Assembly (NCBI GenBank): GCA_977017575.1 | Contig: CDRNVI010000054.1 | Coordinates: 496,001-560,000, forward strand | Direction of reading: 5' to 3' | Source: Paramoeba atlantica | Taxonomy: Eukaryota > Protista > Discosea | DNA length: 64,000 nt | Shown: positions 10,607-63,391 of the stretch, one piece after another | How the letters are laid out: each line of letters begins with the position of its first letter | Position numbering within the stretch: the stretch's first letter is position 1 | Program-made: the position numbers and the translations under genes | The notes under the pieces: generated by a model | What the model was told of the DNA's origin: nothing | Database searches by the model: none | What the model saw: the letters and a program-made list of their open reading frames with translations, nothing else

Positions 10607-11034
<428 letters not shown>

Positions 11035-11091
11035 ATCTCTTCCTCCCCTCTCTATTCCCTTCCACACCCCCATCCCCCTCCCCTGTCCCCC

Positions 11092-11900: not shown

Positions 11901-12319
11901 GGTTGGGTAGGATTTCAATGTGTTTTTTCACGCATTCAATGGATACACGAGTATAGATATACACGAGTATTTGATACACTAGTACTCTAGTATTATTGCT
12001 TTTTGAATATGTTGGTGTTTATAGATTTGGGTAGAATGATGTGTGTTAGAATGTAGTGTAAAATTAGCAAAATACTTACTAAATCGGACGCACCGCGATC
12101 GTGTGACACTTTGATTTTTTGTATCCGTGATATAGAATTGACACTACACTCGGTTTTCATTTGGCAATGAACGATTTTAGAAAAGCTGATGAGTACAGAA
12201 CTTTTATCTTTAGACGCGACACAGAACACGAGCAAAAGATTGGGAAGAAGAGGTTCGTTCATTCACTTTTATTCCTTTGAATCGAAAGGGTACCGGACAC
12301 TTAAAGGCATTTGAACGCA

Positions 12320-15300: not shown

Positions 15301-18300
15301 TGCAAATGACCAAACTTCAAATTACGAAACTTCAAATTATCAAACTGCAAAGTACCAAACAGCGAACTACCAAGCGGCGAATTCCCAACTCGCACATTCA
15401 TCCCCGGTTACCCTTGCCGTGGATGACCTCTGCCTTGCCTTGCCCTCTCACAGTATCACCGTGCTGCTCGGCCACAACGGGGCAGGCAAATCCACCGTGC
15501 TTCACATGCTGACCGGAATGCTCCGGCCGAGCTCCGGGGATATTCAAATCTTTGGACAATCCCTCACACAGCAATGTGAAAGGCTACGCGATGCGGGGAC
15601 CATGGGGTTCTGTCCACAACACAATTTGCTGTGGTCCGGACTCACGGTGGTTCAGCATTTGTATTTTGTTTCCGCACTGAAACAAAGTATACGATGTGGA
15701 GATAAGGAAATCGATTTTTGGGGCAATGCTTCCACCGAAATCGAACACGAGGTGAATGAAATGATGAGAAAATTGAATCTTCTTGACAAAGCTCATTTTC
15801 TTCCCTCCCAACTCAGTGGGGGTCAGAAACGTAAGCTTTCGATTTCTATGGCGCTTTTGGGGAGTAGTCCGCTTGTGGTGTTGGACGAACCCACGGCTGG
15901 GATTGACGTTGCCTCCCGCAGGGCGCTGTGGGATTTGCTGTCGGAATACGTTGCAAGGAAAACAGGAAATGGTCAAAAAGACGGAAACTCTATTTCTGAC
16001 TTGTCTCGCCCGCGAACGTTGTTGATCTCGACGCATTATCTTGATGAGGCGGACGCGCTGGGGACACAGATTGCGATTCTTCATAAAGCTCGTCTACGAT
16101 GTGTAGGCACGCCCTTGGAGTTAAAGCAACGGTATGGAGCAGGATACATTCTGTCCTTGTCGATGTTTTCGCATAGTGTGCCTTCGCCAGATCCTAGAAA
16201 CATCTCTTCGCAGGAAAGTAAAAGTTCTAGAGAAAGTAATGCAGAAAATAATAAGAACTTTCGGACACGCGCTGAGCTTTATTCTCTGATTTCGCAACAT
16301 GTACCAGAGACCCGCATTCTCGTGGACCGCGAGGCGGAAATACAAATTTCGTTGCCCTCCACAGAGTCCGAAACGTTGGCTGTTCTTTTTGATACCTTAG
16401 AAGACCCCACCGTGCGAACCCAGTATGGCATTGAGTCCATGGGCATTCAACATACTACCCTAGAGGATGTTTTCAAATACGTTTCGAGTGAAAGAGAGAT
16501 GACACTACCTTTGAAGCCGAAGGAATTCAAAACTATGGAGCACGATCCCAACCAGGAGCCTTTTTCCAGAACAAATTCTGTAAAGGAATTACAGAACACA
16601 AATCTACGAATGAATGCTGATACGCCACGCCATGCTGACCAGACACGACGTACGATCAATGTTCAAAGCCTTCCCCCTCCCTGTTTTCATCAAACACGCT
16701 ACCGTTTACTCCTAAGTCAAGTTAAAGGCATTCTCTCTCAACGACTCTCTGTAACCCTTCGAGATCGCCGCTATCTTCTCAGCGCTACGCTTCTTCCTGT
16801 GGCACTTCTATTCATGATTTTGTGGATGCACACTCGAGCGTCGGAGGTTGCGGCTCCTACACCTTTAGAGATTTCCCCGGAAGGAGCCTTACCGTCGTGT
16901 GCAGTGCTGCACTCCAAAACACAATGGGGTTGGAGTTTTTTCGGGGAGAAGCAAGCTTCGGAGTGCTCATTTCCACTCCCTATAATTCGTCGGAAACAAA
17001 GAAATGTTGACGAAAACAAGACGGACGACCCGCCTGATTGGTGGACAACTTCTTTACCCACTTTGTTCCCACCGGAATACTGCGTAAAGGAGGTACTTCT
17101 AGAGGATACAAACCCAAATCTCCCGTTCGACTTTCACTCGATCAACCACAGAGCACTGGAATCGACCCTCTGGCCTTCACCCTCGCCACACTCCGACCCC
17201 GTATACCTCCCTGCAGCGCTCCAAATACCCTCTGAAAACTCCCACGACCCCCTCTACATCCTGTGGCACAACGCTTCAGCCCCGCATGCCCTGCCCGAAA
17301 CCCTTCGTGCTCTCCACGTGGCACAAATTCGTGCTTCCGTACAACACGCCATGGGGAGTGAAGCCCATGCGACAAATGTTTTATCCTCTCCTTTTTCTTC
17401 TTATCCATCCTCCACAAAACCTCCTATTGACTTTAGCCCTTTAAAAACGAAAACCGGGGATTACCAAACGGAGGAAAACAGAATCAAAACTAAAAGCGGT
17501 GATCACCAAAATCGAACGGAAAGAAACCAAAATCAAACGAAGGAAAAAAAAATCAAAACGAAAACCGGGGATCACCAAAATCGAACTCAAAGAGACCGAA
17601 ATCCAAACCAAGGAGACCACACTCCAACGGAGGAAAACACAATCAAACCGAATACCGGGGATCACAACAACCAAAGTGAGCCGACCCATCCGACCCCAAT
17701 CCAAACAAAAACCCCAGACCCCCAAAATCAAACAAACAACCCCCATCCACCCCCCTTGAAACCCACCCTCTTTTCCCCAACCCAACCCGGAAATCCCCCC
17801 CTCCCCCCTCCCCTCCACCTCACCCCCCTCTCCCCCCCCCTCCCCTCCCCCCCGATCTCCCCCGACCCCGCGGTCCCGGACACAGCGGCCCGCGCCCTCG
17901 TACTCGCCCCCCTCCTCCTCCTCCCCTTCTCCCTCATCCCCGGGGTCTTCGCCGGCTACCACGTCGCCGAGCGAACCGCCCGCGCCCCCCACCTCCACGC
18001 CCTCGCGGGACTCCACAGCGCGACCCGCTGGTTCGCCCACTCTCTCTTCGACCTCTCCCTTTTTCTCCTCTCTCTCCTCATGTCGCTATCCGTCTTTGCC
18101 CATTTCGCACGGGACGAGTACGTCGGGGAGTGGGGGACCCTCCTGGGGACGGGGGCGCTGGTCGGGGGGTTCGGCATGAGCAGCACCGCGGGGGTGTATG
18201 TGGTGCACCGGGGGTTTGGGTCCCCGAGTACGGCCCAGGCGGCGGTGCGGCTGTTTGCGATGCTCTCGGGGTACACGCTCACGCTGCTGTCGTTTGTGAT

Positions 18301-20239
18301 GAGGGTGGCGTACCCCGGGGGGTACGCCACGTGGGTGCGGGTCTTTCGCGTGTTTCCGGGGTTCTGTCTAGGGGAGGGGTTGATGGCGCTGGCGTGGAGG
18401 GGGGCGAAGAGGGGGGTGGTGGAGAGGTGGGGGGAGGGGGGGGAGGGGGGGCTGGGGTGGGGGGGAGGAAACGAGGAGAGCCAAAAAGGGTGGGGGGGAC
18501 TGGTGGGGAGCACGTCGCCGTTGGCGTGGGATTGTGTGGGCGCCCCGGTCGCGTACCTGATGATGGAGTCGGTTGTTTTTCTGAGTATTGCGGTTGCCAT
18601 GGATGCGCCTTGGTGGGTAGCCAAGTTGTTGCGCCCGTTGATGTGTCGAATTCCTGTCCTCTCGAGAGGCTATACGGACCTCTCTGGGTTTCCTACAACA
18701 AGCGGGACGATTTCTGCTGATCCCGATGTAGTTCAGGAAGAAAAGGAAATTATGGCTGCGTGCGGCCATCAGGGTAGCCGCCCAGATGTTTGCCCTCTGA
18801 CTTCTCGGAAGCGCTCCAAGGATCTCATCACTATTGTAAAGCTAAATAAAACGTATTCGAATGGGGTTTTATCCAAACTAAAACATGATGCGCTGAAGTG
18901 CGTCGCATTTTTCAAGAATCGTATTGCGGTCTCTCTACGCAGACTACCGACCCATTCTTTTTATGAAACAAGACATTTGGAAACGGAAACAACGAATGCC
19001 GTGAGTTCTACTGCAGTTCGCTCCCTTACCTTTGGTGTTTCTCCTGGGGAAGTCTTCGGTTTTCTCGGCGCCAATGGAGCAGGAAAAACCACAACTCTTT
19101 CCATCCTTACTGGAGCGCTTTCTCCAAGCTCGGGTTATGCCACAATTTGTGGTCATCCGCTTCCCGAGAGCGTTTTTGAGACCACTGTGATGCGATCCTG
19201 TTCCCGATCTCCCGTTCTTGGATATTGTCCGCAACTAGAAGGTTTACACGAGTTATTAACCGTGAAGGAGCATTTGCAGTTTTACGCACGACTGCAAGGC
19301 ATTCTGCCCTCCCAAATTCCCACCCAGATCGAATACTTAGTCTCTCTTCTCGAACTCTCCTCCTATTTGAACGTTTGCGCGACGAATCTCAGCGGAGGTA
19401 ATCGTCGAAAACTTGCACTCGGCATCGCACTATTGGGTTCCCCTCGAGTATTAATTCTAGATGAGGCCAGCGCGGGAATGGATCCGTTAACACGGCGGAC
19501 GTTTTGGCAACTTTTGCAACAACTTTATGGAAATCATGACAGAGAGAGCAGGTTGATGGATACCGAATTGAACGAACATAAAAAAATGGGCACCAGAAGT
19601 GCGAGAATTAAGGAGCTGAACAACCTGCCTTCTTCGGATCCTTTTCATATTGCTGTACCCATAGAGCAGGAGGTCCTGTTTTCGAATCATCAAGAAGGCT
19701 TAGCAATTTCTACAGAGCGTTCTGGAGAAGAACTAATCCCTCGTTGTGTGTTACTAAGTACCCATCACTTAGAAGAGGTCGAGGCGTTGTGTCACCGCGT
19801 CGGGATCCTGGCAAAAGGAACATTGCGTTGTCTTGGGACTCTGCCACATTTAAAAAGTAAATTTGCGGTCGGGTATGAACTTTGTTTCGGGCTTCGGAGA
19901 AAGCTACGAAAACAGAGAGTATACGCCACGTGCCAAGAAGAAATGAAGGTTTTAGCAGATCAGGGCATACATAATAAAAGTGGGGGGAGTGATGCAGATG
20001 ACGTACCTCAGCTTTGTGACGTACTCCGGATGGATATATTTCCCCAGTGCCAAGTCATTCTTCGTGAGAGACATGACACGCAACTTAGGTTTCAGATTGA
20101 AGGCGAGTTCTTGCTGTCCCACGCGTTTCGTAGATTGCAGGATCTGTGTCGCAAGCATAAGTTTGCGGTACAGGAATACAGTTTGAACAGGTGCAATCTG
20201 GAAAGCGTTTTTCTGCATCTTTCAGGTCACGAAGCGTAG
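12320..20239 (+). CDS. Full-length ABCA-subfamily ABC transporter (TMD-NBD-TMD-NBD)
   Basis: Single intronless ORF (track starts at TTG 12311; first ATG 12320). EEKESRTREVLWIMGL; NBD1 GHNGAGKST / LSGGQKRKL / VVLDEPTAG; NBD2 GANGAGKTT / LSGGNRRKL / ILDEASAG; C-terminal LESVFLHL. Confidence 0.95.
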   Translation: MDFFFIVVNTVWLIWLAHTRLSMYRYRKRSHNETDHRPGVYSPYDNYEIFASPSWVQFRLCMRKHYWLKKHRKWQTFLEIVLPLFLLLPTLWGYKATGHVKSIAPSRSYIEGNVYDLDTEFFGSTTQGGRICSLRDSYKLSSFHIIPRCPSDAIRKPYPVGLRADKGSEWLTEMLKELQSGELLNHLPEFTSVAKSDGETQRTDAAKGTETALGNLLDTLETSGVMDGVADWFQNMTDGTSPLVASPLSGERNHKSRQKGATRKKGTHYVETRDEDYAAFHTKNLRTLPWERLKTRRPQADGVYATKKRKAFTLAERPPSDTFASKSTQTNEVVLYCLPSPSDLCISGTLQDGPDPPRYRVRGNVPQRIPSLEAFLLQKHFQRLSQLQPRRQTRHSSRLNENMNPDVELKERFFPSTVLWFASNESEIAERFQKFVLRRHPIAASLLGMRNSSSFKCETASSDEHTEHLDRPYTFPCNIETTYFNTTSDALQACERTSLSEQAANVNSPPCSAQGVVWAIVDFRTFNNETGKYDYAIYMNHTRLPPSTLKRTPEGITDSFKAMSSAPWDTDDMEMFLPVLGSNAPFTKYLTSGFLVLQSLLDEFVCDEQTQYQRKEDVEGSSPFSTKPILVRFPDPPKLLFDFLSQIGPHLPLTLIFGFTYFVSHLTQALVEEKESRTREVLWIMGLRRTSYYASWAIAYAFSSAISSGLLSTALSRTLLSQTSFFVLFAVLFLFCFSLIGFSALLSTLFERAQLAALVTPLIFTLSTLPVSLMLPTSQDEETIQLLVAYTNPFYWIQIVCKYVLHFLRISPSSDPLPNFSVLLALPFSSTSFTLWMRQMVKRESSGRGISVLEVLTGASPNWFYQSCWLLLLSIIFSAFLALFLDQVLPNTYGIQKPFFEVVKDFTSNFYNSLFHLVNLWKATIPVKTTTWSKAKRCTNKPTVPRSDASTTIHLQHLRKTFPDTLPPPPQQRAMLSNAHISENNRLETANDRTANDQTSNYETSNYQTAKYQTANYQAANSQLAHSSPVTLAVDDLCLALPSHSITVLLGHNGAGKSTVLHMLTGMLRPSSGDIQIFGQSLTQQCERLRDAGTMGFCPQHNLLWSGLTVVQHLYFVSALKQSIRCGDKEIDFWGNASTEIEHEVNEMMRKLNLLDKAHFLPSQLSGGQKRKLSISMALLGSSPLVVLDEPTAGIDVASRRALWDLLSEYVARKTGNGQKDGNSISDLSRPRTLLISTHYLDEADALGTQIAILHKARLRCVGTPLELKQRYGAGYILSLSMFSHSVPSPDPRNISSQESKSSRESNAENNKNFRTRAELYSLISQHVPETRILVDREAEIQISLPSTESETLAVLFDTLEDPTVRTQYGIESMGIQHTTLEDVFKYVSSEREMTLPLKPKEFKTMEHDPNQEPFSRTNSVKELQNTNLRMNADTPRHADQTRRTINVQSLPPPCFHQTRYRLLLSQVKGILSQRLSVTLRDRRYLLSATLLPVALLFMILWMHTRASEVAAPTPLEISPEGALPSCAVLHSKTQWGWSFFGEKQASECSFPLPIIRRKQRNVDENKTDDPPDWWTTSLPTLFPPEYCVKEVLLEDTNPNLPFDFHSINHRALESTLWPSPSPHSDPVYLPAALQIPSENSHDPLYILWHNASAPHALPETLRALHVAQIRASVQHAMGSEAHATNVLSSPFSSYPSSTKPPIDFSPLKTKTGDYQTEENRIKTKSGDHQNRTERNQNQTKEKKIKTKTGDHQNRTQRDRNPNQGDHTPTEENTIKPNTGDHNNQSEPTHPTPIQTKTPDPQNQTNNPHPPPLKPTLFSPTQPGNPPLPPPLHLTPLSPPLPSPPISPDPAVPDTAARALVLAPLLLLPFSLIPGVFAGYHVAERTARAPHLHALAGLHSATRWFAHSLFDLSLFLLSLLMSLSVFAHFARDEYVGEWGTLLGTGALVGGFGMSSTAGVYVVHRGFGSPSTAQAAVRLFAMLSGYTLTLLSFVMRVAYPGGYATWVRVFRVFPGFCLGEGLMALAWRGAKRGVVERWGEGGEGGLGWGGGNEESQKGWGGLVGSTSPLAWDCVGAPVAYLMMESVVFLSIAVAMDAPWWVAKLLRPLMCRIPVLSRGYTDLSGFPTTSGTISADPDVVQEEKEIMAACGHQGSRPDVCPLTSRKRSKDLITIVKLNKTYSNGVLSKLKHDALKCVAFFKNRIAVSLRRLPTHSFYETRHLETETTNAVSSTAVRSLTFGVSPGEVFGFLGANGAGKTTTLSILTGALSPSSGYATICGHPLPESVFETTVMRSCSRSPVLGYCPQLEGLHELLTVKEHLQFYARLQGILPSQIPTQIEYLVSLLELSSYLNVCATNLSGGNRRKLALGIALLGSPRVLILDEASAGMDPLTRRTFWQLLQQLYGNHDRESRLMDTELNEHKKMGTRSARIKELNNLPSSDPFHIAVPIEQEVLFSNHQEGLAISTERSGEELIPRCVLLSTHHLEEVEALCHRVGILAKGTLRCLGTLPHLKSKFAVGYELCFGLRRKLRKQRVYATCQEEMKVLADQGIHNKSGGSDADDVPQLCDVLRMDIFPQCQVILRERHDTQLRFQIEGEFLLSHAFRRLQDLCRKHKFAVQEYSLNRCNLESVFLHLSGHEA

Positions 20240-26744: not shown

Positions 26745-29729
26745 TTAGCAAGCAGAGCGGTTTTCCTCGTCCGTCCATTCAGCTTCGTTCCTCCGAGCCC
26801 AGATAATATAGCTGGCCCGACCAGCCATTAAACTCATGCTTTCTCTGCATGATCTGGCTCGTTTTCGTTCCCCTTGGAACACGGCGTCAAGATAGCGACA
26901 GGATCCGCTAGGAAGTCCCCGTGCGCCGATCTCGAACGCTAGGGCGTAGCAGTTCGGGTTCTCGATTCTGCGCTCGTGGAGAAGTAAGTTATACTTCTCT
27001 GACTTCCGCCGGTGTGCGTTTTCACAGTTCTCCTCCCACGGAACAGTTAGCTCAATGATGAACTCGGTCCCGTTCCGTAGTTTGATCCAGCCATCCGGGC
27101 GCAGTAAACTGTCGCTACTGGTGTACCACGGGGGTGGGTTCCGTTCACCCGTGAGGTCAAAGTGGCAAGCTTCGGTGGTAGGGGATTGGCGTACGTGTCG
27201 TGCGAACTCGCGGAGAACCATGTCGTGTCTTAGTGTGTACCTCCCTTTTTGTAAGGATGTGTTGCATGATGAAAGGACGTGTCTTGTTGTTTGTGGTTTG
27301 TCTCGGCATATGGGACATTTTGTATCAGAGTGATAGTTGCGACCCCATTGTGCAAGGGATACTCGGGAGGGCAGGGGGGTTAGAGTCATGACGAAGGACA
27401 TGAATCGCGAGAGTTTCTCGTTTCGGATCCCATGGATGGCAGATACAAATTCTTGTGCCATTTCTGGGTCTGACGGAAACTGCCACCAGAGGGCAGCAAC
27501 AGGAGCACGTTGTCGTAGACGTGTAATCATTTGTTCTTCGTGGGCATCACGGAGTATTTGTCGTGCGCGCTGTGGGTCGTTAAGATGATCGGTTATTTGT
27601 GCACCTGGGCGGATTTGACCTTTCGCACGCTTCCTTTGCTCTTCCTGGATGCGGAAGCGCAATGCCTTGAGCACGTTCGGGTCTCGTGATTGATGCATTT
27701 GGGTAAGTGACGTTCCGGTGCACTCGTACCAGAGTTGTGTCAGACTTTTGAGATTCCAGCCGCCGCAGGAGTATAGTACTTCTGTGCTACCGGCACGAGC
27801 CATGTTAATCCATCGTCGAATGTGTGCTGTGACTCGCTTCTGAAGCCGCAGAACTGAGCTGAAAGAGATGCAGGGGTGGATGGTAAACTGAAACCGAAGT
27901 CGGGAAATTATAGCGTGTGTGTAGATCCACAGCTTAGCCGGGAGATTATGGGCGCTGGCACTCGTGTTTTCAAGCCATCCTTTCAGCTTTGAGTTTAATT
28001 TATTGAAAAGTTCGTTTAGCTGCTGAGATCCAGGGGCGAGGGTCATACCAAGAAATGAGCTTCCGGCGTCGCAAATATGTGGAATTTTTTCTCCGTATGT
28101 GGTTACTGCAGGTCTTCTCGTCATGTACCCCGGGTGCTCTTCGCCTTTCCGCGTGCTCATACATTGGACTCGACTTTTTGTGACGTTGATTTTTAATCCG
28201 ATTTTGGAGAGCACCGTGGTTAGTGCGTTCAGCGAAGTTTGCATGTCACGGTCACTTTCGGTCAGAATGGTTAAATCATCGGCATACGCTTTCAAGAAGT
28301 TGTTATCGCCGTTGGGAAGGCGCATGCCAAAGGTTGGACACGAGAACCGAACGTATCGTAATACGATTTCCATGACTACTAAGAATATAGTGGAGGAGAG
28401 TGTATCGCCTTGTAAGACTCCCTTCTTTACATGTATGGGACGCGTTAGACCTTCGTAACATTTAACTCGTATGTGTGCATCAGTGAGGCTGTCTTTGATG
28501 TAGTCGACAACGTTGCAGGGTATGCCTGCCCAAGCTAGGGAAGCTAGTATAATGTTATGCGGGATCGAACCAAAGGCGTTAGTGAGGTCCAATTGGGCAA
28601 GACAGTACTGTCGTTTATGTCGCTGGTAGTGCTGGAGGAGGGTGCATAGAGTTTGGGTGTGCTCCAATATCCCATTGATTTCGGAAAGAAACCCTTTCTG
28701 TATTTCCGGGTCAATCACATTGTGTCCAATAAGATGTTGGGTCAGGCGATGCGATATGATTGTGTGGAACGCTTTACCAAGGGCGCTCGTCAGTGAAATG
28801 GGGCGCCAATTTTTGGGGTTTTCCGGTGCTCCGCTCTTATGTATCAGCTTAGTGATTGCAGTTTTCCATGATGGAGGGCAGGTCGAGAAAGTCATCAGAT
28901 TATTGAATACCTTAGCAAATTGATCATGCATGGATGGACATTTTTTAAGAATCAGATTGGTGATCGTGTCTGCACCGGGTGAGCTGGAGTTCCGTTTCAT
29001 ATTGATGGCTGCTGTGACATCGTCTCGCGTGATTGGGTCCCAATGCATGGGTTGGGCGGCTCCTGGTCCGAGTACATCTGGAGGAGGCAGTTGGAAGAGT
29101 TGTTCACTGGGTTTAAAGCTTGACTCGTAGTATGTCTCTATGGTGTTCCGGTCACAGGTCGGGTAAGTTGCATTCTGTACTTCATTAGCGTCAGGTTTGT
29201 CGATCGTTTCTGAAGCTGCTGTCCACGGATTTCTGGAAAATCTCTCGGAGGCCCAGTGCTGATCGAATTCTTCTCTTTGTTTCGTCGCTTCTTCCTCACG
29301 TATCCTGACTAGCTTTCGACATTCTTTGATTTGTGCTCGTAATTCGTCTCGTTCCGTCCTACTTCTCGTATAGCGTAGCGAAGTTTTCAAGGTTGTGAGA
29401 TGGTGTTTCAGTTCTTGTGCGACTCTCTCCGTGGCGAGTGGTCGATACCTTCGTCGGGCGTGTCCGGTGCTAGCTCTGATGAGGAAGCCCCTTGTCGGAT
29501 TCGCTTCCGTCGCTATTTCGCAAGCAGATACGGCTAGGGCGGCGCTAAGAAGTTCCGCGTTACGTATAGCTGTCTTCCTGTCCGTTGTATCGCTTAGAAG
29601 TTCGTTGCAACGTGCACTTGCTCTCGCTTCAACCTGTCGCCATTGCTCTTCGCTGAGTCGTATGGTAACCTTCCCGCCAAGTATTGCATTGTGCTTTTGC
29701 AGGAGTTCTACTGCTTTTTGCATACGCAA
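26745..29729 (-). mobile_element. HERO-type RT+RLE non-LTR retrotransposon, family B; open 994-aa ORF, probably 5'-truncated
   Basis: WRPISL, QLDLTNAFGS, GVLQGDTLS, AYADD; CPIC..H..C; RYTLRHD; LRPDG..IIELTVPWEE..HRRKSEKY; FEIGARG. Confidence 0.92.
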
Positions 29730-37985: not shown

Positions 37986-38024
37986 AGATAGCGTCTTATA
38001 AAGATACAGTTTCTTAACTTGTTG
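37986..38024 (+). other. Spliced-leader-like 39-mer at the retroelement 5' junction
   Basis: AGATAGCGTCTTATAAAGATACAGTTTCTTAACTTGTTG, compared with the kinetoplastid SL pattern ..ACAGTTTCTGTACT..TTG; 39 nt upstream of the element ATG. Confidence 0.5.
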
Positions 38025-38063
38025 AATTATTTTCAATTTTGTACTAACTTTATCTTCCGAAGC

Positions 38064-41000
38064 ATGGCCTCCAATGTCACCTCACCGGCTCCCATCGCAC
38101 ACGACGGCCCCCCTGGAGGACCTGTCAGCGCGCAGCGACATCCCCAGAGCTTTCACTTCATCCAAAGTCGAGCGATGCCCGTCAAAATCCGCCCCTCGGA
38201 CAGCGTCACATGGTCATATTTCCCAGACACGCATGCCGCAGCCATTGCCCTCACAGAACGAGAGTTCTTCTCGAGTGTCCACATGGTTGAAGCCTCGATC
38301 GGCAAATCCTTGAAGTCGGAAAGCAAAAGAAGTGATGGTCTGATAGTACAAACGTGTACCACTCAAGATGTCATTGAAAACAACGCATGTGAACACCTAA
38401 AATACCAAGAAACGGGAAACCCAAGTCGCACGTTTTGTCACGCCAGCTGGAGTTCCGCCTACAGGGATTCGTTCATGCAGCTTAACGCAGTGTACTCCTC
38501 TTCGAACGCGCTCGGCAAAGCGGTCACGAAGAAATTATGTGGTAGTGACATCCCAGGATTACGAAAATTCCAAATCACACACGTAACTCAAAAAATACAA
38601 CCCATTGAACTACTACGGGGTCACCCAGAGATCACCTACGGCGCACCCTATAGGATCCGAGATGACTCTTACAAGGTGTCACCGCCATCATATGCCTCAA
38701 AACACGCTTCCGAACCACGTGCCCCATGCGCTCATAAATGCCGGGACAAAACATCGTGTCTTCACGAATGTTGCAATGTACGACACGAAGGATCTCTTTC
38801 GCCTAACATGTCTCTTCCCTCTCCGGAGGACGTTGCCCCTATGGAACCCTCACTTACTTCTCACAGAAGACCGCGCAAACACACATGCCGCGACAAAAGA
38901 AATTGTCTGCACAAGTGTTGCAAAGTGGGGGTCCCCATTACAGATGCCCAAAGTAGTCCTCAACCAGTGCTACCCCTCGTGGAACCACCCATAGCTCGAG
39001 CAAGTAGTCCACTACCAGCAGACTTATCCATAGACACCGATCAGCATACCACACCAGACATCGGACACTTCGAAGAGGTCAGGGATCCGGAGCTCCCGAC
39101 CGCAAATCTGTCCTCACTAGCATACATGGATGACGCCGCACACCACACACAAACATCAACCAATGAAGTCAATTATCACCCCTGTCGGCGCATAAGTAGC
39201 AACAAAGCTCAGTGCAAGCATCGATGTTGCAAAAATGGTGTCATACAACCTAGCACGGAGGTTGTACTCCGCGAACCCGTCCGTACCTCTCCAGACCTGC
39301 ACACCAGCAATGACAACAACACCCCTGCCCCAACAGCGCCTCGTCGCAACTGCGCTCATAAATGTAAGGACAAGGCAACATGTAAACATCAATGCTGCCA
39401 GAAAGGAGTTCTCCTCAAAGTCGCTGAAGTAGCGTACTCTGCCATATGCTGGACCACGAGAAATATACTGTGCCCTGCAATGGGTGATGCGGAACGCGCC
39501 GCAAAAGCTTCACTACCGCCCCCTCCACGCGCAACAACCTACCCCCCAGTTCACACCAACCCCTCGAATCGCTCGAGTCCAATACTGAGCCCTGTACGGA
39601 ATGCACCACTTGTCCACGCCCCACAACATGATTCTGCTTCTGTACGCCGATCCTCACCTTCTTTACCCCTTGTGCAGTCCGCAACAGATCCCACGCCTCT
39701 GCCTTTACCTTTACCTCCCCCACCAGAAGGAAACTGCGAACACACGATATTGCAGCGCATCCCTCGTGTCCGGCAAGTCCCGGCTACCCGACCCCGCCCT
39801 GTACTGCAGAACCTACTCGAAACATTCCACACAATAAATGGAGGTCGCGTTCTAGTCCGTTTCACAGAGGAACAGTGGGAGAGTATGGTTGCGAAGATCG
39901 AGGAGCGCTGCAACTCGTACATCCACCTGGCGCGAAACAAAGAGGACGCCCTGTCGCAGGCTGAAATACTCTCAGCAATCCTCGCTGTAACTGCATTCGA
40001 GGCCGCACGGGAAAATGATCCGACGCACGGCTTTCTTATACGGACCAGAACTGGCAGATCCCGAAGAAACTCACGACCCTTAGCCATTGAACGCACAGTG
40101 AAAGTACTCAGTCAACACGTTCGACAACTTAAACGTGCGTTAACGTTCATGAAGGGTCCTGCGAGAAACAAGCAACGAGGGGAAATAAAGGAAGCCGAAA
40201 AGGCACTAAAACAGTACATGGAAGAATCCAGTATGCAGAGGAAAGAAATCGGTCGACGGTGGGCTCTTACGCGATTCCAGCGAAATCCCTGGACAGCCGC
40301 GCGCGAATGCTTAGATCGCGTCGACCCATCTACCTCAGAAACTGAGACGTCCTACCCTACAGTTCCTGTACAGGAGGTTGAAAGATTCTTTGTGGGCTCA
40401 ATGTCTAGACCAGAAGAGATACACAAGATTCCTCCCGCAGAATTTACGAAACCCATTCCCCTTGATGAGATGCAATGGTCAGATATTGACTCAGACATGA
40501 TCCCAGCAGCCGTCGCATCCAAACGCTCTGAGGCTGCCCCAGGCTCGGACACTGTATCGAACGCGCTGCTAAAGCGCTGCGCCCCTCTCTTTACTCACAT
40601 GGCACAGGTGTTTAATGATGTCCTAAAATTTGGTGTATGCCCTCCAACCTGGAAAACTGCGGTCACTCGACTTATCCACAAAGGGGGCCCCACCTCAAGT
40701 ATGGAAAACTGGCGGCCGATAAGCTTGACTAGCTGCATTGGGAAGCTTTTCCACTCAATCCTCAGTCACCGTATCCTTCAGCATTCCCTGGATTCCAATG
40801 CCCTGGATACAACAATACAAAAAGGCTTCTTGCCGCATATGAATGGGACAGTTAAGCACACCCAGGTTCTTTGCGAGCTCCTCGAGCACCAGCGGCGCCA
40901 CAAAAGGCAATACGTGCTTGCCCAGTTTGATATCAAAAACGCGTTTGGATCCATACCCCATACAATTTTATTTCAGGCCTTAAAATGGGCGCGCGTCTCA

Positions 41001-42749
41001 CCGATCCTCATTAACTACATCAAAGCGCTGTACGAACGAGCGTCTATACAAATTAAATGTGCAGAAGGACTCACGAAGTCTATTGAGATAGGTCGTGGTG
41101 TATTGCAGGGAGATACGCTTTCGCCTATTTTATTCAACTTGGCGATGGAGCTAGTTCTGCGTTTTGTCCGTTCAAGTTGCCCCGAATACGGGATCACGTG
41201 GAATGCGAAAGAAATTTTTCTAAAAGCCTTCGCAGATGACCTCACTATTCTGACAAATACCCCCCAGGAAATGCAGAATGCTACAAACGCACTCGTCAAA
41301 GTTCTAAGCGATATTGGGATGAAACTAAACGTGAAAAAATGCCGGCTGCAACACATGGCGATGACGCAAGACTCTGGATATATGACACGCCGACCACAGA
41401 TCATGATCGGCACGTCACCTATCCCACACATATGTGATAATGGTAGCATATTTTTAGGCATGACGCTCGCACCCGGTGCTCAACAAGGCAAGACACTCTT
41501 TTTAAAACTACGAACCCGTCTGCGAGCCTGGTTGCGTAATATATCTTCCAGCGCACATGATCTTCCCGCGCGCCTGTGGATATACAATAACGGAATCATC
41601 TCTCGTCTGCGGTATTCCTTCGTCGTGAACTCATGCCTTACCTTCAATCACGTACTTCGGCTACAGCGATGCCCCACACGCGAAATTCGGAAATGGTTAA
41701 ACGTAGCGAAATCAGCAACTAGTGAGCTGTTCTATTCAGAGCATGGCTGGAATCTCATGAGTCTGTCAAAACTTTGGCTTCTTTCCACTGTGGGGACAAT
41801 GGAACAAATGGATAAATCGCGTGATCCCGAGGTCCAGCACGCTTTATGTGAGCGCATCAGGCGAGAAGCGAACAAAAGGAGAGCAGGATACATTCGCCCG
41901 CCGACGGATATGCACAGTACAAGCCATAGTAACGTCCGAAGACTCCTTGGAAGCGAATACGAGCGACACCTCACGGAAGCCGTCCAACGGCGTACTGCCG
42001 TAGCAGGACGATGGTTCAGAATCGCAACGGAAGCAGACCTTGCGAGAGACTTCGCCGCCGCCCTATGCAACCTTAAGAGTGAATCACTTTCGCGGTTCAC
42101 ATCCTCAGTGCTTACCGAGACGCCGCTCCCAACCAGGGGGTCTCTTCGTAGGTGGGGCGTATCGACACATGCGAGCGATAAATGTCCCATCTGTGACACC
42201 GAGACACAAACTACGCGGCATATTCTATCTGGTTGTAGGAAATCACTCGGACAAGGGAGGTATGCCCTGCGGCATAACATGGTACTACAGGCATTAGCGA
42301 ACTCCGTACAACGATTCTCCTCCACTAGTCAATGTCACTTCGATCTCCCCCACTTCCGCTCCACCCCCGCGTGGCTCACGAACCTTGATACTGAGCTACG
42401 TCCTGACGGATGGGTGAAACTATCTAACGGAGAAGAATACATTATAGAACTTACCTGCCCTTGGGAGGAGAACTTTGAGTTCGCGCACGAGCGCAAAATA
42501 GAAAAGTACACGAGTTTATATCACTCTAGAAAACTCGACCGTCCTACCACATTCCTATTCGTCTTCGAGGTGGGAGCGAGAGGCAAACTGCATATGTCGG
42601 CCCGAACGCTCAACTCTCTCTTCATGGGAAATGAAGAAGCGGTTGCAGTGTGTCGCCCAAATATGACGACTAGCGCTCTTCGGGGAAGTTTCATAATTTT
42701 CCAGCACCGCGAGAACAAACAGTGGATGGAGGTTAGTTCTGAGGAATGA
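38064..42749 (+). mobile_element. HERO-type RT+RLE non-LTR retrotransposon, family A; intact single ORF of 1561 aa
   Basis: ATG 38064; four Cys/His fingers, RT (WRPISL, FDIKNAFGS, GVLQGDTLSP, AFADD), CCHC knuckle, RPDG..IIELTCPWEE..HERKIEKY, FEVGARG. Confidence 0.95.
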
Positions 42750-57355: not shown

Positions 57356-57819
57356 TCGTAATAACATAACATCGGTTACGACGAATACTGTTTATTATAA
57401 ACAGTACAAAGCACCGGTATAAATTATACCGGTGCTTTGTTCGTTTTTTGGATATGTAGTATCTTCGATGATTTCGGTCATCGAACGGTTCATGTCATTG
57501 AACGGTTTTACAGGTGATTTCGAAAAATTAAAATTCAAACAAAAAATTGAAAATACTAACATCAAACTATTTTCTCGGCCAGTGTACCACAACTGACTTC
57601 AGAAGACTGTATCGGGAGGAGGAGGAACAAGGCAAAATGCAGAAACGTTTTTGAGGATGACGATTTCCTTGTATGAAATGCTAGGATCTGCTTCGGAAGT
57701 ACGGGAGTGAGAGGAGGCGATCCGGTAGAGTATGTTTTTGCTGGTTGCACGCATGCAACGTGAATACCGCAGCCAGTTCATCAAGCTTGCCGTGGTCCAT
57801 CGGACTATGCGGGTTCCTC

Positions 57820-58139
57820 TCCTCGATTCCAGATCACGTAGCTTCCGAAGATCGCACTTCGCATTATTTGTTGTAGACAAGATGATGTGGCTTCTTCATC
57901 CCCGTCGAATTGTGGACGAGTTGAGATGCCGTTGTGTTGGGCATTCCTCTCGCACCAATCTCAAATGCGATAGAGTGACATGGGTCATTGTCCGGGCGAT
58001 GCTTGTATAACAGTTCGTTGCGCTTACCGCTTTTACGATGATGATCCCCCATAAGGTTCTCCTCCCACGGTGCGGTAAGCTCTATAATATGCTGACAAAC
58101 ATTTCTTAGTTTAACCTAGCCGTCGGGTCGCAATAATGA
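57820..58139 (-). mobile_element. HERO family-B-like 3' RLE fragment, truncated by the TIR element
   Basis: Minus frame SLLRPDG*VKL..IIELTAPWEEN..RKSGKR..FEIGARGMP, then GSYVIWNR after a frameshift. Confidence 0.8.
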
Positions 58140-59892
58140 GGGAGTTGCTATGCCCTGTCCATGGTATCATGTTCAGGGGAACAGCAACTCCCCATTACCT
58201 CGGCGTAGTAAACACGCCTTGGCTTGCCTGGCACTACGATTGCCGAAAAAAATATATTTTCGGTTCATTTCGCAGCCCAGTCGCTTCCCACTTAAGGGGC
58301 CCGCTCCCACAACCGAGTAATCTCCCCGGCAGCACGGTTTTACTCATGCGTCGAGAAGGCTGGGGTGTGAGACCAGGGTGCATTTATAGAAAATTTTCGG
58401 AAGAAGAAATACGAAGGAAATTTTACTGCATAATGGAGTAGAAAACTTTGAGTGCAATAGAACAAAGGGTTGGCGTAAACCTTTGGTTAACGTTTTTTCT
58501 TTTGGGGGGGATTTACTTTCTTTGCCATTCCTCATGCTATCCACTCATAAATTTTACTAATTACTCTAGATTCGTGTGTTTGTTTCCTCCAGTTACGCTT
58601 TCTATAATTCTTACATAGGGTCTACATGTACATCGCCAGTTCTTAGAGCTGAGTTCAGGAGTGCTTCTTTTATGTCATAATTATGCCCTTCTCGAGTCAA
58701 CCCGTCTGCTGGGTTTTCTTTAGATTTAATATGGAAAATTCGAAAAGAATGTCCATGTTTCCCTATCTGTTCATCCATTTCCGTGATCTCATTACACATC
58801 GATCTCCTAACTGATGTACGCCCCGATTCTGATGGTATTTCACTCTGGTGAAACCAGTGTCGCATATCAGCGGATAAAAAGTTTACGTTGGGGAAATTCT
58901 CTATTACATGGATAATTTCAGCGATAGCTGGAAAATTCAAGCAAGGAGGGCGATTGCACATCTCATTTAGTGGTGTTCCATCCGCAATACTTCTTGACAA
59001 TTCCTCCCCTTTTGATGCCTCAAAGTAACGTAAATATAAACGTGATGATGATCGAGAGTCGTGTGCCACACGTAGCACCCCGCATTCCACGAGTTCTAAT
59101 AAATGTTGTAACCAAACCCCGGAGGATAGTTTCCTTATTTTCCCGTGAAAAGGGGGACAATTTATCCATTCAATAAAATTTTGGGTACTTTTCAATGCCG
59201 TGCAACATTTGATACCCCATGGTAAACCATGTTTTAGGTGTGTTGATGTAAAGAATCCAAGTTGTTCCTTCAGCATTTATGAATCTTCGTTAACAAAGAA
59301 ATCGGGTATAAATGCATCAAGCAAAGCAACCGTTTGCTTTTTTTTTCTAGTTTTCTTTTTTTTTCTCCACCGAATAACACTAACGCGTTCACTATCGTCG
59401 GTCTGAATTTCTGATTCAATATTCCTACTAGGCGAGATATCCTGAAAAGCCGTATTCCGAGCGTCAACCCGAGACGTCCGGTGTGTGCCTCGATACTTCC
59501 GTATGGGGGGATCTATAACGCACCAACAATACTCCCCCCCTTTGTTTTCTCTCCCCCGAACACTCCATATTTTTCAACTTCATATTCGTATTTCGAGCGT
59601 CAACCAGAGACGTCCGGTGTGCCTCGATACTTCCATATGGGGGGATCTATAACGCACCAACAATAGTCCCCCCCTTTGTTTTCTCTCCCCCGAACACTCC
59701 ATATTTTTCAACTTCAAATCTTCTTAGGGGGGAGGACTCCCGTTACCATGCCTCAAGTGAGGATTAAGGAACTAAGTTTTTTTTTTCGGCAATCGTAGTG
59801 CCAGGCAAGCCAAGGCGTGTTTACTACGCCGAGATAATGGGGAGTTGCTGTTCCCCTGAACATGATACCATGGACAGGGCATAGCAACCCCC
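58140..59892 (-). mobile_element. 113-bp-TIR element carrying a deleted LTR/DIRS-type RT-RNase H
   Basis: TIRs at 58140-58252 and 59780-59892 (2 mismatches). ORF 58611-59276 has YFEASK..SRSIADG..LNEMC..PP..FP..ADMRHWFHQ (RT N-half) joined to FHIKSKENPADGLTR (RNase H C-terminal motif). Confidence 0.75.
59451..59716. repeat. Tandem duplication, 2 x ~133 bp, inside the TIR element
   Basis: CGTATT.CGAGCGTCAACC.GAGACGTCCGG...CCATATTTTTCAACTTCA at 59451 and 59587. Confidence 0.9.
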
Positions 59893-59904
59893 TCATTATC
59901 ACTC

Positions 59905-59937
59905 CTTCGTAAGCACCATGTTACCGGGACCAAGCCC
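59905..59937 (+). ncRNA. Degenerate 5' half of a twister ribozyme
   Basis: CTTCG TAA GCAC C ATGTTA CCGG GACCAAGC CC aligns with the complete twister and shares its TCATTATCACTCCTTCGTAA leader; the 3' core is missing. Confidence 0.5.
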
Positions 59938-60050
59938 TAGGTGCCAGGCATGCCATACCACGTCACAACTCCCCACCCTCTCCCTTCTGTTTTTATTCTG
60001 TTTTCACTTTATTGTAAAAAAACATGCCGGAGAGGAGGGTGTATAACGCA

Positions 60051-60785
60051 AATGCAACGGCAAGTGAGCCCCGAAGGACACGGAACCCATGGGCCTCCCA
60101 GCACGAATGCTGGGGCGGTGGTACCCCGAAGGGTACGGAGCCCATGGGCCTCGTTACAGAGGAATAAATGCAACGGCAAGTGTGTCCCGAAGGACACGGA
60201 GCCCATGGGCCTCCCAGCACGAATGTTGGGGCGGTGGTACCCCGAAGAGTACGGAGCCCATGGGCCTCGTTACAGAGGATGAATATATAAATGCAACGGC
60301 AAGTGTGTCCCGAAGGACACGGAGCCCATGGGCCTCCCAACACGAATGCTGGGGCGGTGGTACCCCGAAGGGTACGGAGCCCATGGGCCTCGTTACAGAG
60401 GATGAATATATAAATGCAACGGCAAGTGTGTCCCGAAGGACACGGAGCCCATGGGCCTCCCAGCACGAATACTGGGGCGGTGGTACCCCGAAGGGTGCGG
60501 AGCCCATGGGCCTCGTTACAGAGGATGAATATAAATTATATTTATAAATGCAACGGCAAGTGTGTCCCGAAGGACACGGAGCCCATGGGCCTCCCAGCAC
60601 GAATGCTGGGGCGGTGGTACCCCGAAGGGTGCGGAGCCCATGGGCCTCGTTACAGAGGATGAATATATAAATGCAACGGCAAGTGTGCCCCGAAGGACAC
60701 GGAGCCCATGGGCCTCCCAGCACGAATGCTGGGGCGGTGATACCCGAAGGGTACGGAGCCCATGGGCCTCGTTACAGAGGATGAA
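60051..60785 (-). repeat. Tandem array of 6 units (116-134 bp, mostly 123), each with three UUCG-loop hairpins
   Basis: Units start at 60051, 60167, 60290, 60413, 60547 and 60670 (AATGCAACGGCAAG). Minus strand carries GTACCC-TTCG-GGGTAC, CCCAGCA-TTCG-TGCTGGG and GTGTCC-TTCG-GGACAC; GCCCATGGGC palindrome twice per unit. Confidence 0.95.
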
Positions 60786-60943
60786 GTACTGCCAGGCCGG
60801 GACCAAGCGAATTGATGCGTGACATTTTCAGGCGTGTAAGATTGTTTAGGTAAATGGAGCTAAATGTAGTAGTTCTACTGGATACTAGAAACAAGTAGTT
60901 CAATTATATTTAGTTTATAATCGTGCTATAGATGTATTGAAAT

Positions 60944-61012
60944 CTTCACCCTCACACTCCGCCGAATATGGCGGTGCCGGGCTTGGGACCGGTAACAAGC
61001 GTGTTTACGAAG
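60944..61012 (-). ncRNA. Twister ribozyme, P1-type with P5
   Basis: Minus-strand RNA: CUUCG UAA ACAC GC UUGUUA CCGG UCCCAAGC CCGG CA CCGCC AUAUUC GGCGG A GUGU GAGGG UGAAG. Helices P1, P2, P4, P5 and pseudoknots T1 (CCC/GGG) and T2 (GC/GC) can all form. Confidence 0.82.
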
Positions 61013-61691
61013 GAGTGATAATGAAGTATCACTCGATATCCCGCGCCCTTCACTGCGTCCCCACGGAAGGCGAAGAGGTCCAGCAGGGAGCGTTGATTGT
61101 GCCTACCCCTGCTGGCCCTAAATATCTCTGGCGGTCTTGCCCTGCATGACAAAACTACTATCAGAACAAGGTGTTGAACTTTGACAGATCCTCTTTTGGG
61201 TCAAATATGAATTCTCATTTCAAAAACAAGATTAACTGGGTTGAACTCCAACGCTTCACCCCTCACTTCAGTTGACTTCGTCCTATTTCTAGTTATCCTG
61301 ACCTCCAGTGACTTCCAGCGACTGTCACCATCGCCAGCGACTGTCAGCGACCTCCAACTACTGTCTACATAATCTCCATAGATACTAAGTAAATAATATT
61401 TATAATGTGAAGAATAGAAGATTTATAATGAGGAGAACCATCGCTAGTACATTAAGCCTGCAAGTTTGTAGTACATTAAGGTTGTACTGTAAGTACTGTG
61501 CTGTAAGTACTTTACTGTACATTAAGGCTATACTGTAAGTTGAATAAGCTGAATGAGAGATTTGCTAAGATGGATTTACTACCCTAGGGCATTGATCTAC
61601 ACCTGGGGCATTATGGGGTACTACATTGCACAGCTAATTTACAAAGTTGTAACTTAAATTTCGAATTGGACAGCCCTACTCACCATCGGGA

Positions 61692-62637
61692 ATGTTTCTT
61701 AACTTCGAGCGTCATGCTTTCAACGGTGCGGACGACGGATCCCACCTTAAGTGCGGCAAAGTACGCCTCGACTTACTCCCTCAGGAGCACTTGTTAGAAA
61801 CCTTTCTCCTCGGGGCCACCGTTCGCGACCCCTCCTGGGTGACCGAAAAGCGGAGCCTCTTCGGAGAGGCAAAAAAAAATCTCCCCCTGCACGTGGCGCG
61901 GCATTACCTGTGATACCCACCAAAACATTTTCACCCTCCTCGGGCGTGCGGGATCCCCCCAACTCGCCGGAAACCTCTCCTGGGGGGCACTTCCCGCGAC
62001 CCTGGAGCAACTCCAGCTCCACAGCTACCCCACGATTCTGGGGGATGGCTTCACCCTTTCCCATCTCCCCAGGTCACTCCGTAGGGTCGATGTGGTGCGC
62101 ACCGGGTTATCGGGTTATCCCCTACCCCGTAAAAGTTCACATCACCCGCAGCTCACGGAGCTACGCCTCCAGGAGGCGAAATCCTCTGGGGCTCTTGATC
62201 TCTCCGCCCTTCCGGTGAGTTTGCAGCAACTCGGGCTGCGGATGAATCGATTTACCGGGCCCCTTTTTCTTACGAAAGGGTTACCCCCGTCGCTCTGTCG
62301 GCTCGACCTGTCAAGGAATAAGTTTACGGAGGGGCTGGAGTTAAGCGGGATGCCGTCGTCTATGGTCCTGTTGAATTTATTCGGCAACGCGCTCTCGGGG
62401 TCGGTGACCTTTCCGGGTGATTTTCCCCCCTCGATGCTTTATGTGGATTTGCGGAGGAATGCGTTCGAAGGGGTTGTGGATTTTGGGGAAGTTCAGGAGC
62501 ACAAGATGCTGTATATGGAATGGAGCGAGGATAATGGGGTGTTGCTGAGGGGGAATAAGTTTACGGATTGGGTTCCGAAAAAGAAATTTCACGGAAGGCT
62601 CCCTCGAGGTGTTGATTTATACTGTGGTTTCCATTGA
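61692..62637 (+). pseudogene. LRR gene (paralog of 47928) with one frameshift in an A-run
   Basis: KCGKV leader in 61692-61913; shifting frame at the A9 run near 61872-61880 gives SPCTWRGITC.., continuous with 62092-62637. Confidence 0.78.
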
Positions 62638-63093
62638 ACTTTCCCCTCCGCGGAATTTTGAGTTTTTTTGCCCGTTTTAGCTCATTTTTGTTGCAAACGA
62701 GAGATTTCGTTCCCCCAGTCATCAAACGCAATGAAAACAATCCATAATTCGAGAGAAAGTAATTTGACAAAGCGTAAACAAACAAAGTGCAGAAATATTT
62801 TATACGTTCCAGAAAAATGACCCAAGAAAGCATGTGTTTTGGTCCCAGGGGGTATGGGAGGGTCCCTACAAAAAAAGGGCAGCAATGTTCTTCACCAGGA
62901 AAATGAGATCTATCAAATGCTGCAAAAATGAGAAAAAATGAATAAAAGAACTCAAAATTCCGCGGGGCGGAAGATATCTTGAAACCACTGTAGGTAGTTC
63001 GAGCTGGACGTAGGAGGATTTGTATTTCTGTCTTTAGACGCTCAAATCGAAAAGGAGTTCTTGTGTCTTTTGGCACTCAAATTTTCGAAGCAG

Positions 63094-63391
63094 TGAGCTT
63101 GAAATTGGTTGTAGCCGAATTGGCAATCCGTGGTTGAGAACTGTGCGATTTCTTCTTCCTTCTTCATCGGCCTTCATAGAACGAGGAGGTAATCTTCAAC
63201 GTGAAGGGAACATTGTGGAGGTACTGTTTTGTTTGAAGTTCTCACGAAAAATCACACAAAACAGCACCTTCATAATGTTCCCTTCACGTTGATTACCTCC
63301 TCGTTCTATGAAGGCCGATGATGAAGGAAGAAGAAATCGCACAGTTCTCAACCACGGATTGCCAATTCGGCTCCAACCAATTTCAAGCTCA
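63094..63391. repeat. Long near-perfect inverted repeat (~137-bp arms, 23-nt spacer)
   Basis: 63094-63232 is the reverse complement of 63256-63391, with a few transitions and one 3-nt indel. Confidence 0.92.

Follow-up and report, generated by a model that had tools for sequence, protein, structure and literature searches.

A hairpin-rich tandem array in the leader of a defective, probably DIRS-like retroelement of Paramoeba atlantica, and its possible role as a cis-acting RNA signal

The minus strand of the window, the whole stretch of 64,000 nucleotides from Paramoeba atlantica that was analysed, carries a tandem array of UUCG-capped hairpins. The array is very probably a leader repeat of a transposon. 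A fuller statement can be drawn up, in which the array is a VNTR in the leader of a defective DIRS-like retrotransposon and acts as an RNA signal in cis. Taken as a whole, this statement is plausible, if somewhat less than probable. The function by itself, that of a reiterated cis-acting RNA signal, is put forward tentatively. A neutral satellite borne by the transposon is nearly as likely.

The array and the element that carries it

The array resides in a putative retroelement, whose parts are as follows.

58133..61024, minus strand: host element, a defective twister-headed element of the tyrosine-recombinase type ("N family"), 2892 bp
60944..61013, minus strand: twister-like ribozyme (P1 type with P5 hairpin), from a weak Rfam match and a core read from the sequence
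60786..60943, minus strand: A+T-rich spacer from ribozyme to array, read from the sequence
60050..60785, minus strand: tandem array, 6.0 units of 123 nt (Tandem Repeats Finder)
59780..59937, minus strand: internal complementary region (ICR), from inverted repeats with both termini
59451..59716, minus strand: second internal tandem repeat, 134 nt x 2.0, present in other copies too
58611..59276, minus strand: 221-aa open frame, RT/RNase H deletion remnant
58133..58252, minus strand: 3' terminal segment, partner of the ICR

From 5' to 3', the order is twister-like ribozyme, spacer, array, ICR, RT remnant and 3' end. The ends come from a comparison between the window and 20 loci taken with their flanks. 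They are 61024 (or 61023) on the 5' side and 58133 on the 3' side, and both recur at independent loci (L035, L037, L040, L045, L036 and L043/44). Outside the ends the sequences are unrelated between copies, and the 5' flanks differ. The 123-nt unit has 131 matches at at least 20 loci of the genome (45.7 Mb, 248 contigs). At every locus compared with its flanks, the array is inside one dispersed element. About 15 element heads in the genome are more than 91% identical. The window also contains microsatellites, LINE-type reverse transcriptases, a frame of 2642 aa for an ABC transporter, and LRR genes.

The ICR matches both termini. An inverted repeat of 120 nt (98%) joins 58133-58252 at the 3' end to 59780-59899. 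Contiguous with this match, 59893-59937 forms an inverted repeat with 60979-61024, which makes it the complement of the outermost ~45 nt at the 5' end. Within these, the ICR reproduces the initial 20 nt without a mismatch and diverges after them; the stretch matched by this arm includes the predicted cleavage site. No terminal inverted repeat was found between the 58133 and 61024 ends; only the ICR pairs with each end. Complementarity of an ICR to the joined termini is one mark of the DIRS order. As far as sequence comparison can tell, it is present in both the window copy and L052, a long relative described below.

Residues 16-155 and 151-221 of the 221-aa frame match sites about 1.1 kb apart in frames of 482-587 aa, at 48-53% identity. 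The frame is apparently composed of N-terminal and C-terminal pieces of the RT/RNase H frame of the relatives, fused by a deletion. It has no Pfam match. A close autonomous parent with the 123-nt array was not found, the best RT match being 53%. Based on the order of the parts and on this remnant, compared with relatives such as L052, the window element is a deleted, non-autonomous copy with its sense on the minus strand.

The ribozyme at the element head is predicted to cut between U61007 and A61006, 18 nt inside the 5' end. Its core elements are UAA at the cut, ACAC/GUGU (P2), CCGG-UCCCAAGC-CCGG (P4/L4, with UCCCAAGC as L4 between the P4 arms) and GAGGG, the pseudoknot element. An inserted hairpin, CCGCC...GGCGG, corresponds to P5. 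Its sequence differs between the N family and the family of long relatives (A family), yet it pairs in both. A genome search for the 16-nt core CCGGTCCCAAGCCCGG, one mismatch allowed, gave 112 occurrences, and a control gave 0. According to Rfam, the window copy matches Twister-P5 at 22.5 bits (E 0.12), below the gathering score of 37.6. The relatives match twister-P1 at 33-37 bits (E 7e-5 to 9e-4), below the gathering score of 67.2. At gathering level, the whole window and eight related loci gave no Rfam match. The element head appears to keep a conserved twister core and its stems, with scores under the Rfam threshold. The final 26 nt of the spacer (60790-60815) are partly complementary to the twister P4/L4, and the MFE fold pairs this block with the twister. 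The block is invariant among relic copies.

Relaxing Rfam to E up to 10 brought up nothing but the head twister and, outside the array, a chance match to RAGATH-25. It is very improbable that the array is a free-standing structured ncRNA, a viroid-like multimer or a self-cleaving repeat. The strong predicted folds described below are in favour of such an RNA. Nevertheless, all arrays examined with their flanks sit inside the same element, no Rfam family lies within the units at E up to 10, no unit has a ribozyme, and the sole self-cleaving motif is the head twister. A retrozyme or viroid-like multimer, which has a self-cleaving motif in each unit, was rejected on the same grounds. A search for tRNA genes found none.

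Tandem Repeats Finder reports for the array a period of 123, 6.0 copies, 92% matches, 4% indels and a score of 1240, as well as a sub-period of 55 nt inside it. The start-to-start spacings of the units are 116, 123, 123 and 134 nt. The unit is composed of a 55-nt half (palindrome, H1 and H2) and a 68-nt half (palindrome, H3 and A+U-rich linker). A 43-nt core, consisting of a palindrome and a hairpin, occurs 12 times in the array, which corresponds to two half-units per unit. On the minus strand, the order in the unit is linker, GAGGCCCAUGGGCUCC, H1, CACCGC, H2 (in general CCCAGCA-UUCG-UGCUGGG), AGGCCCAUGGGCUCC, H3 and the A+U-rich linker. One unit is given here as an example.

60283-60405, minus strand: example unit
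60376..60391, minus strand: near-palindrome 1, GAGGCCCAUGGGCUCC
60360..60375, minus strand: hairpin H1, GUACCC-UUCG-GGGUAC
60336..60353, minus strand: hairpin H2, CCCAGCA-UUCG-UGUUGGG
60321..60335, minus strand: near-palindrome 2, AGGCCCAUGGGCUCC
60305..60320, minus strand: hairpin H3, GUGUCC-UUCG-GGACAC

Predicted folds, strand and a second array

H1 and H3 are of the c(UUCG)g type, in which C-G closes UUCG on a Watson-Crick stem, and H2 is a(UUCG)u. On the minus strand of the array, 13 of the 13 hairpins with a stem of at least 5 bp and a 4-nt loop have the loop TTCG. By the same criteria, the ~122 kb that make up both strands of the window outside the array have 6 TTCG hairpins. The mean there is 4.2 per loop across the 256 loop sequences, and TTCG is about average.

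A single unit of the minus strand has a predicted MFE of -59.2 kcal/mol (z -5.3), or -61.0 kcal/mol (z -5.9) in another register. For the plus strand, z is -2.0 and -4.1 in two registers. In the MFE fold of the single unit, the near-palindromes pair with each other and enclose H1 and H2, with H3 beside them. The helix that closes this fold is UGUAACG with CGUUGCA. For the array as a whole, the predicted energies are -363.8 kcal/mol (z -12.2) for RNA of the minus strand and -332.1 kcal/mol (z -6.5) for RNA of the plus strand.

An earlier note, made from the letters of the DNA alone, had described units of ~123 nt with three TTCG stems each on the minus strand, two of them as C-UUCG-G. It had also stated that the near-palindromes could pair into a junction and that unique spacers are lacking. 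All of this agrees with the hairpin count, the predicted fold and the contiguous repeats reported here. The reading as a CRISPR array was ruled out, since the units are contiguous without unique spacers and the genome is eukaryotic.

The same note had held that the strand cannot be told from substitutions among units, and the counts bear this out: 10 variant types pair on the minus strand only, 7 on the plus strand only and 11 on neither. It had also offered a single-stranded DNA form, the C-GAA-G mini-hairpin. The register of the hairpin stems is that of a C-G-closed loop of 4 nt, the stable RNA form, and c(UUCG)g hairpins are among the most stable known in RNA. The DNA form, on the plus strand, needs a register shift of one base, which breaks the stems covarying around the 4-nt loop, and it found no support. 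The minus strand is likely the functional RNA strand of the array, because it is the strand of the twister-like ribozyme 190 nt upstream and the sense of the enclosing retroelement. The strand question, left open in that note, is settled insofar as this context can settle it.

In relatives of ~7 kb, the frames follow one order: Gag-like, then tyrosine-recombinase-like, then RT-like. In L052 (6.95 kb), the order is twister, a 17-nt repeat, a 78-nt array, ICR, a 347-aa frame, the recombinase-like frame, the RT-like frame and the 3' end. The 347-aa ORF1 (2729-3772) has an Arg/Gly-rich basic C-terminal tail. The recombinase-like frame matches Phage_int_SAM_4 (E 7e-4) and Phage_integrase (E 9e-3), and the frame at 5594-7351 matches RVT_1 (E 8e-5) and RVT_3 (E 2e-3), all below the Pfam cut-offs. 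The ICR layout of L052 matches that of the window element. Between the A and N families, the head, the ICR and the 3' end are 78-80% identical, and the remaining leader is not alignable.

The 78-nt array of the A family has 2 to 12 units, and each unit contains two c(UUCG)g hairpins (Ha and Hb) and the palindrome CCUCGAGG. The stems of Ha and Hb, GGUCC/GGACU and GGUUC/GAACU, differ by one compensatory pair. At 12 of 13 loci, a twister core precedes this array on its own strand, and the array starts 321-384 nt further downstream. The sole significant similarity between the 123-nt and 78-nt units is the 12-mer GUCC-UUCG-GGAC, the core of H3, and 5 of 500 shuffles score as high. The genome has 131 copies of this 12-mer, almost all of them within these arrays, and 2 of a control. 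The 78-nt unit folds no better than shuffles (z -0.9 to -1.8). In the A family, G.U pairs favour the sense strand, with -27.2 kcal/mol against -18.0 kcal/mol on the opposite strand. Another twister-linked array (67 nt; L036 and L046) is located upstream of its ribozyme and has no UUCG loops.

The unit lengths of both arrays are multiples of three, 123 nt being 41 codons and 78 nt being 26 codons, and sense-strand frames are open across the two arrays. A protein-coding repeat is still the least probable of the explanations considered. Either strand has open frames, in several phases; arrays of 119 nt, of 121 nt and of higher order break them, and there is no Pfam match at cut-off.

The palindromes permit a reading at the level of DNA. 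In the 123-nt array, every half-unit contains GCCCATGGGC, a palindrome of 10 bp without mismatch; the palindrome of the long relatives is CCTCGAGG. These might be double-stranded sites for a dimeric protein (the recombinase, a host protein or a chromatin protein), or the units might be promoter or enhancer monomers, as the tandem 5'-UTR monomers of mouse L1 have promoter activity. We consider this improbable. The palindromes are wholly different between the two families, whereas the ends that the recombinase would bind are 78-80% alike. A double-stranded site does not require the constant, strand-asymmetric UUCG seen in five stem types. Besides, a promoter located 3' of the ribozyme would yield RNAs without the 5' end of the element, and neither ribozyme nor ICR would then serve a purpose.

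Another improbable role is that of an insulator. A fast-folding block could part the twister from the ICR, so that the ribozyme cuts before the competing pairing forms; alternatively, and with as little probability, it could compact the loop when single-stranded cDNA folds back on the ICR. The array is always between the twister and the ICR in both families, and the ICR arm is complementary to the first ~45 nt, that is, the 5' half of the twister with its cleavage site. DIRS-1 follows a single-stranded cDNA route, and the ICR is the only feature shown to be essential (PMC7192593). On the other hand, any sequence could serve as a spacer. The UUCG loops and the palindromes are left unexplained by an insulator. 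The distance from twister to ICR varies several-fold with the number of units, so its length is not constrained.

Conservation, satellite behaviour and possible function

The array varies in copy number and organisation as a satellite or VNTR does, inside a mobile element. Among element copies, it consists of 1 to 22.3 units, with unit lengths of 119, 121 and 123 nt. The 55-nt and 68-nt halves are able to repeat separately, and higher-order periods of 178, 191, 265, 314 and 437 nt are seen. The window and L031 represent one insertion with the same flanks (97-99% identity over 57427-63294), and their arrays have 6.0 and 10.3 units, respectively. The array length therefore changes after insertion. 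The most diverged units are those at the array edges. The biggest arrays are in defective copies, which need no translation. Metagenome contigs scanned with a 24-base pattern from the 123-nt unit gave 0 matches.

A test for covariation was performed within the family, on 37 distinct units with 96% column identity. Of the cells, 97.7% pair; 0 of 38 pairs are changed on both sides, and shuffles do equally well. That no covariation signal appears is due to the units being 96% identical. Variation affects 26 of the 76 stem columns, 3 of the 12 loop columns and 14 of the 35 other columns; stems and loops within the family are no better conserved than unpaired columns. In one array, a chimeric H1/H3 hairpin, its stem only 3 bp long, has multiplied to 7 copies. 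H2 and both palindromes are gone from six relic copies (77-78% identity). Diverged single units on two contigs (C36 and C41) were tried as informative homologues and rejected, being decaying relics beside helicase and eEF1A genes. The earlier note had named covariation and loop conservation among diverged homologues as checks of its idea; within the family, the former is absent and the latter is not in excess.

Comparison between hairpin types gives another picture of the design. H1 and H3 are clear paralogues, two compensatory pairs apart. Over the five stem types, the UUCG loop is invariant and 92.7% of the cells around it pair, compared with 63.8 +/- 5.1% after shuffling; since the segments were picked as being hairpins and H2 is possibly not homologous to the others, this figure describes a design and is not strict covariation. 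The non-alignable 78-nt array, its same position in the leader and the compensatory differences between paralogues suggest that the hairpin design may have been kept across the families. The idea of a selected RNA scaffold in place of a plain satellite thus fared unevenly. The richness in hairpins and the recurrence of the design in the 78-nt array are in its favour; the satellite behaviour, the location inside an element and the missing covariation within the family are not.

These data are compatible with a neutral, transposon-borne satellite, to which we give about one chance in three. A segment with a hairpin and a palindrome would have arisen by chance and been duplicated, with no role in the life cycle. 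It would grow and shrink by slippage and unequal crossing-over, events that palindromes and hairpins favour. The range of 1-22 units, the higher-order periods, the diverged edge units and the two lengths at one insertion are as such a satellite would leave them. So are the absence of covariation and of excess stem or loop conservation within the family, the spread of a weakened chimeric hairpin and the decay of the relics. Against a neutral satellite speaks the second array of the long relatives, which is non-alignable and combines c(UUCG)g hairpins with palindromes in the same way, at the same place in the leader and on the same strand. The compensatory pairs that separate paralogous hairpins speak against it too, and TTCG hairpins are no general feature of this genome.

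The cis-acting signal is the reading we favour, because the design is present in two families, the loop is strand-specific, palindromes accompany it, the leader position is before the Gag-like frame, and large arrays occur in defective copies. The Arg/Gly-rich basic tail of ORF1 in the long relative is a further point for it. Points against it, besides the results within the family, are that the 78-nt unit folds no better than shuffles and that the 67-nt array linked to a twister is free of UUCG loops and placed upstream. It can be speculated as follows. The host element would be a DIRS-like tyrosine-recombinase retrotransposon, defective and presumably mobilised in trans. The array would be transcribed within the element RNA and retained downstream of the twister cut. 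Its RNA may fold into rows of hairpins capped by c(UUCG)g and G+C-rich palindromic helices. These modules could be a reiterated cis signal, for recognition, dimerisation or packaging, used by the Gag-like and RT proteins of the element. Since the modules would act in cis, defective copies would retain them and could multiply them. Copy number would drift through unequal crossing-over, slippage or template switching. A more specific version, more doubtful, regards the arrays as packaging or dimerisation arrays of a ribozyme-headed lineage. There, defective elements would amplify the signal and out-compete autonomous relatives for the Gag-like and RT proteins.

If this reading is true, DIRS-type elements would gain their first defined cis-acting RNA signal, and the array would be a multimerised hairpin tag of natural origin. 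A c(UUCG)g leader module on the ribozyme strand, in two diverged subfamilies, is a concrete and testable candidate for such a signal. The array is also a clean case of a satellite-like repeat arising within a mobile element. If it has no function, the question is closed all the same, as it is not a new RNA gene.

Comparison with known systems

Tandem repeats in the leaders or UTRs of retroelements are already known, and the array is not new in kind. Examples are the 5'-UTR monomers of mouse L1, the Su(Hw) sites in the gypsy leader, and the UTR repeats of plant LTR retrotransposons that seed satellites. Like the array, these are head-to-tail, non-coding leader blocks with variable copy number and can be nurseries of satellites. 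Unlike the array as read here, they act, or are thought to act, as DNA, in the form of promoters or protein sites. The array differs from them also by its position behind a predicted 5' self-cleaving ribozyme and by its c(UUCG)g hairpins and palindromes on the sense RNA.

Retroviral leaders contain RNA signals at a similar place. Moloney MLV Psi has PAL palindromes and the GACG-tetraloop hairpins SL-C and SL-D, and HIV-1 has the DIS. These leaders share with the array the location between the RNA 5' end and gag, and the G+C-rich palindromes beside hairpins of one tetraloop. Their signals are single-copy and of a different tetraloop class, whereas the array has 1-22 units; the resemblance is an analogy and not membership. 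To our knowledge, the selection and handling of RNA by tyrosine-recombinase retrotransposons are very poorly understood.

Ribozymes at the head of retroelements have been described. According to the available part of one report, twister variants head the Perere-3 non-LTR retrotransposons of Schistosoma mansoni (PMC8501958). There, as may be the case for the host element, the head twister frees the element RNA from an upstream co-transcript. Perere-3 is a non-LTR element, and in that part of the report a hairpin array behind the ribozyme is not mentioned. Literature searches joining twister with tyrosine-recombinase or DIRS elements found nothing relevant. Ribozymes and leader hairpin arrays are not mentioned in the papers on DIRS-1 (PMC7192593) and VIPER/TATE (PMC6681497).

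The host element also resembles the DIRS elements, for which the geometry of the ICR has been described (PMC6681497, PMC7192593). The host element shares with DIRS-1 and the DIRS-like and VIPER/TATE elements (PMC7192593, PMC6681497) an ICR matching both termini and, in its long relatives, Gag-like, recombinase-like and RT/RNase H-like frames, of which the recombinase and RT matches are under the Pfam cut-offs. It differs from DIRS in that the ICR is in the 5' leader instead of near the right end, long inverted terminal repeats are absent, and a twister-like ribozyme is placed at the 5' end.

The block between the ribozyme and the array

60790-60815, minus strand: block GCUUGGUCCCGGCCUGGCAG, immediately 5' of the array
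L047-L050, on contigs C36 and C41, antisense to genes: six relics of ~190 nt each, among them L049:2520-2689 and L049:5930-6098

The block at 60790-60815 is complementary at ~10/12 positions to the P4/L4 segment, a helix and loop of the twister-like ribozyme. In the minimum-energy fold of 60786-61024, the ribozyme is paired with this block. Because of this predicted pairing, the block may act as an attenuator of the twister.

Each relic corresponds to one array unit plus the block, and the block is the best-conserved part of these copies. The identity of the six relics to the 123-nt unit is 77-78%. They are located in intergenic DNA among tandem helicase/eEF1A genes, in the orientation antisense to those genes. 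Neither a twister nor an internal complementary region (ICR) adjoins any of the six.

Copies and repeats of the element

59451-59716: a second tandem repeat inside the element, 2.0 units of 134 nt, 95%

The 134-nt repeat lies between the ICR and the reverse transcriptase remnant, and it is found in other copies of the element as well. The insertion with its flanks (57427-63294) has a second assembly copy, L031 on contig C99, with 97-99% identity. This pair represents either a haplotig or a segmental duplication, and its two members differ in array length, with 6.0 units in the window copy versus 10.3 in L031. Further duplicate pairs of a similar kind are L038/L039 and L043/L044.

Elsewhere in the window, a 101-nt inverted repeat at 63094-63391 (98% complementary, arms separated by 96 nt), in which a second inverted pair of 41 nt is nested, resembles a foldback or a MITE-like structure. 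Two long reverse transcriptase frames of the non-LTR type, 26745-29729 (minus) and 38019-42749 (plus), both contain RVT_1, and one additionally contains zf-RVT. There are also an ABC transporter frame of 2642 aa (12311-20239) and a (TCTA) microsatellite of ~108 units (10608-11038).

A 67-nt array at a variant twister

L036:4642-5301 and L046:19-678: 67-nt tandem array, distinct from the 123-nt array

At both loci the palindromes CACGTG and CTGCAG are abundant in the 67-nt array, and TTCG loops are absent from it. The variant twister core CCGGTCCAAAGCCCGG is positioned 65-100 nt downstream. The 67-nt array is probably part of another ribozyme-linked element family.
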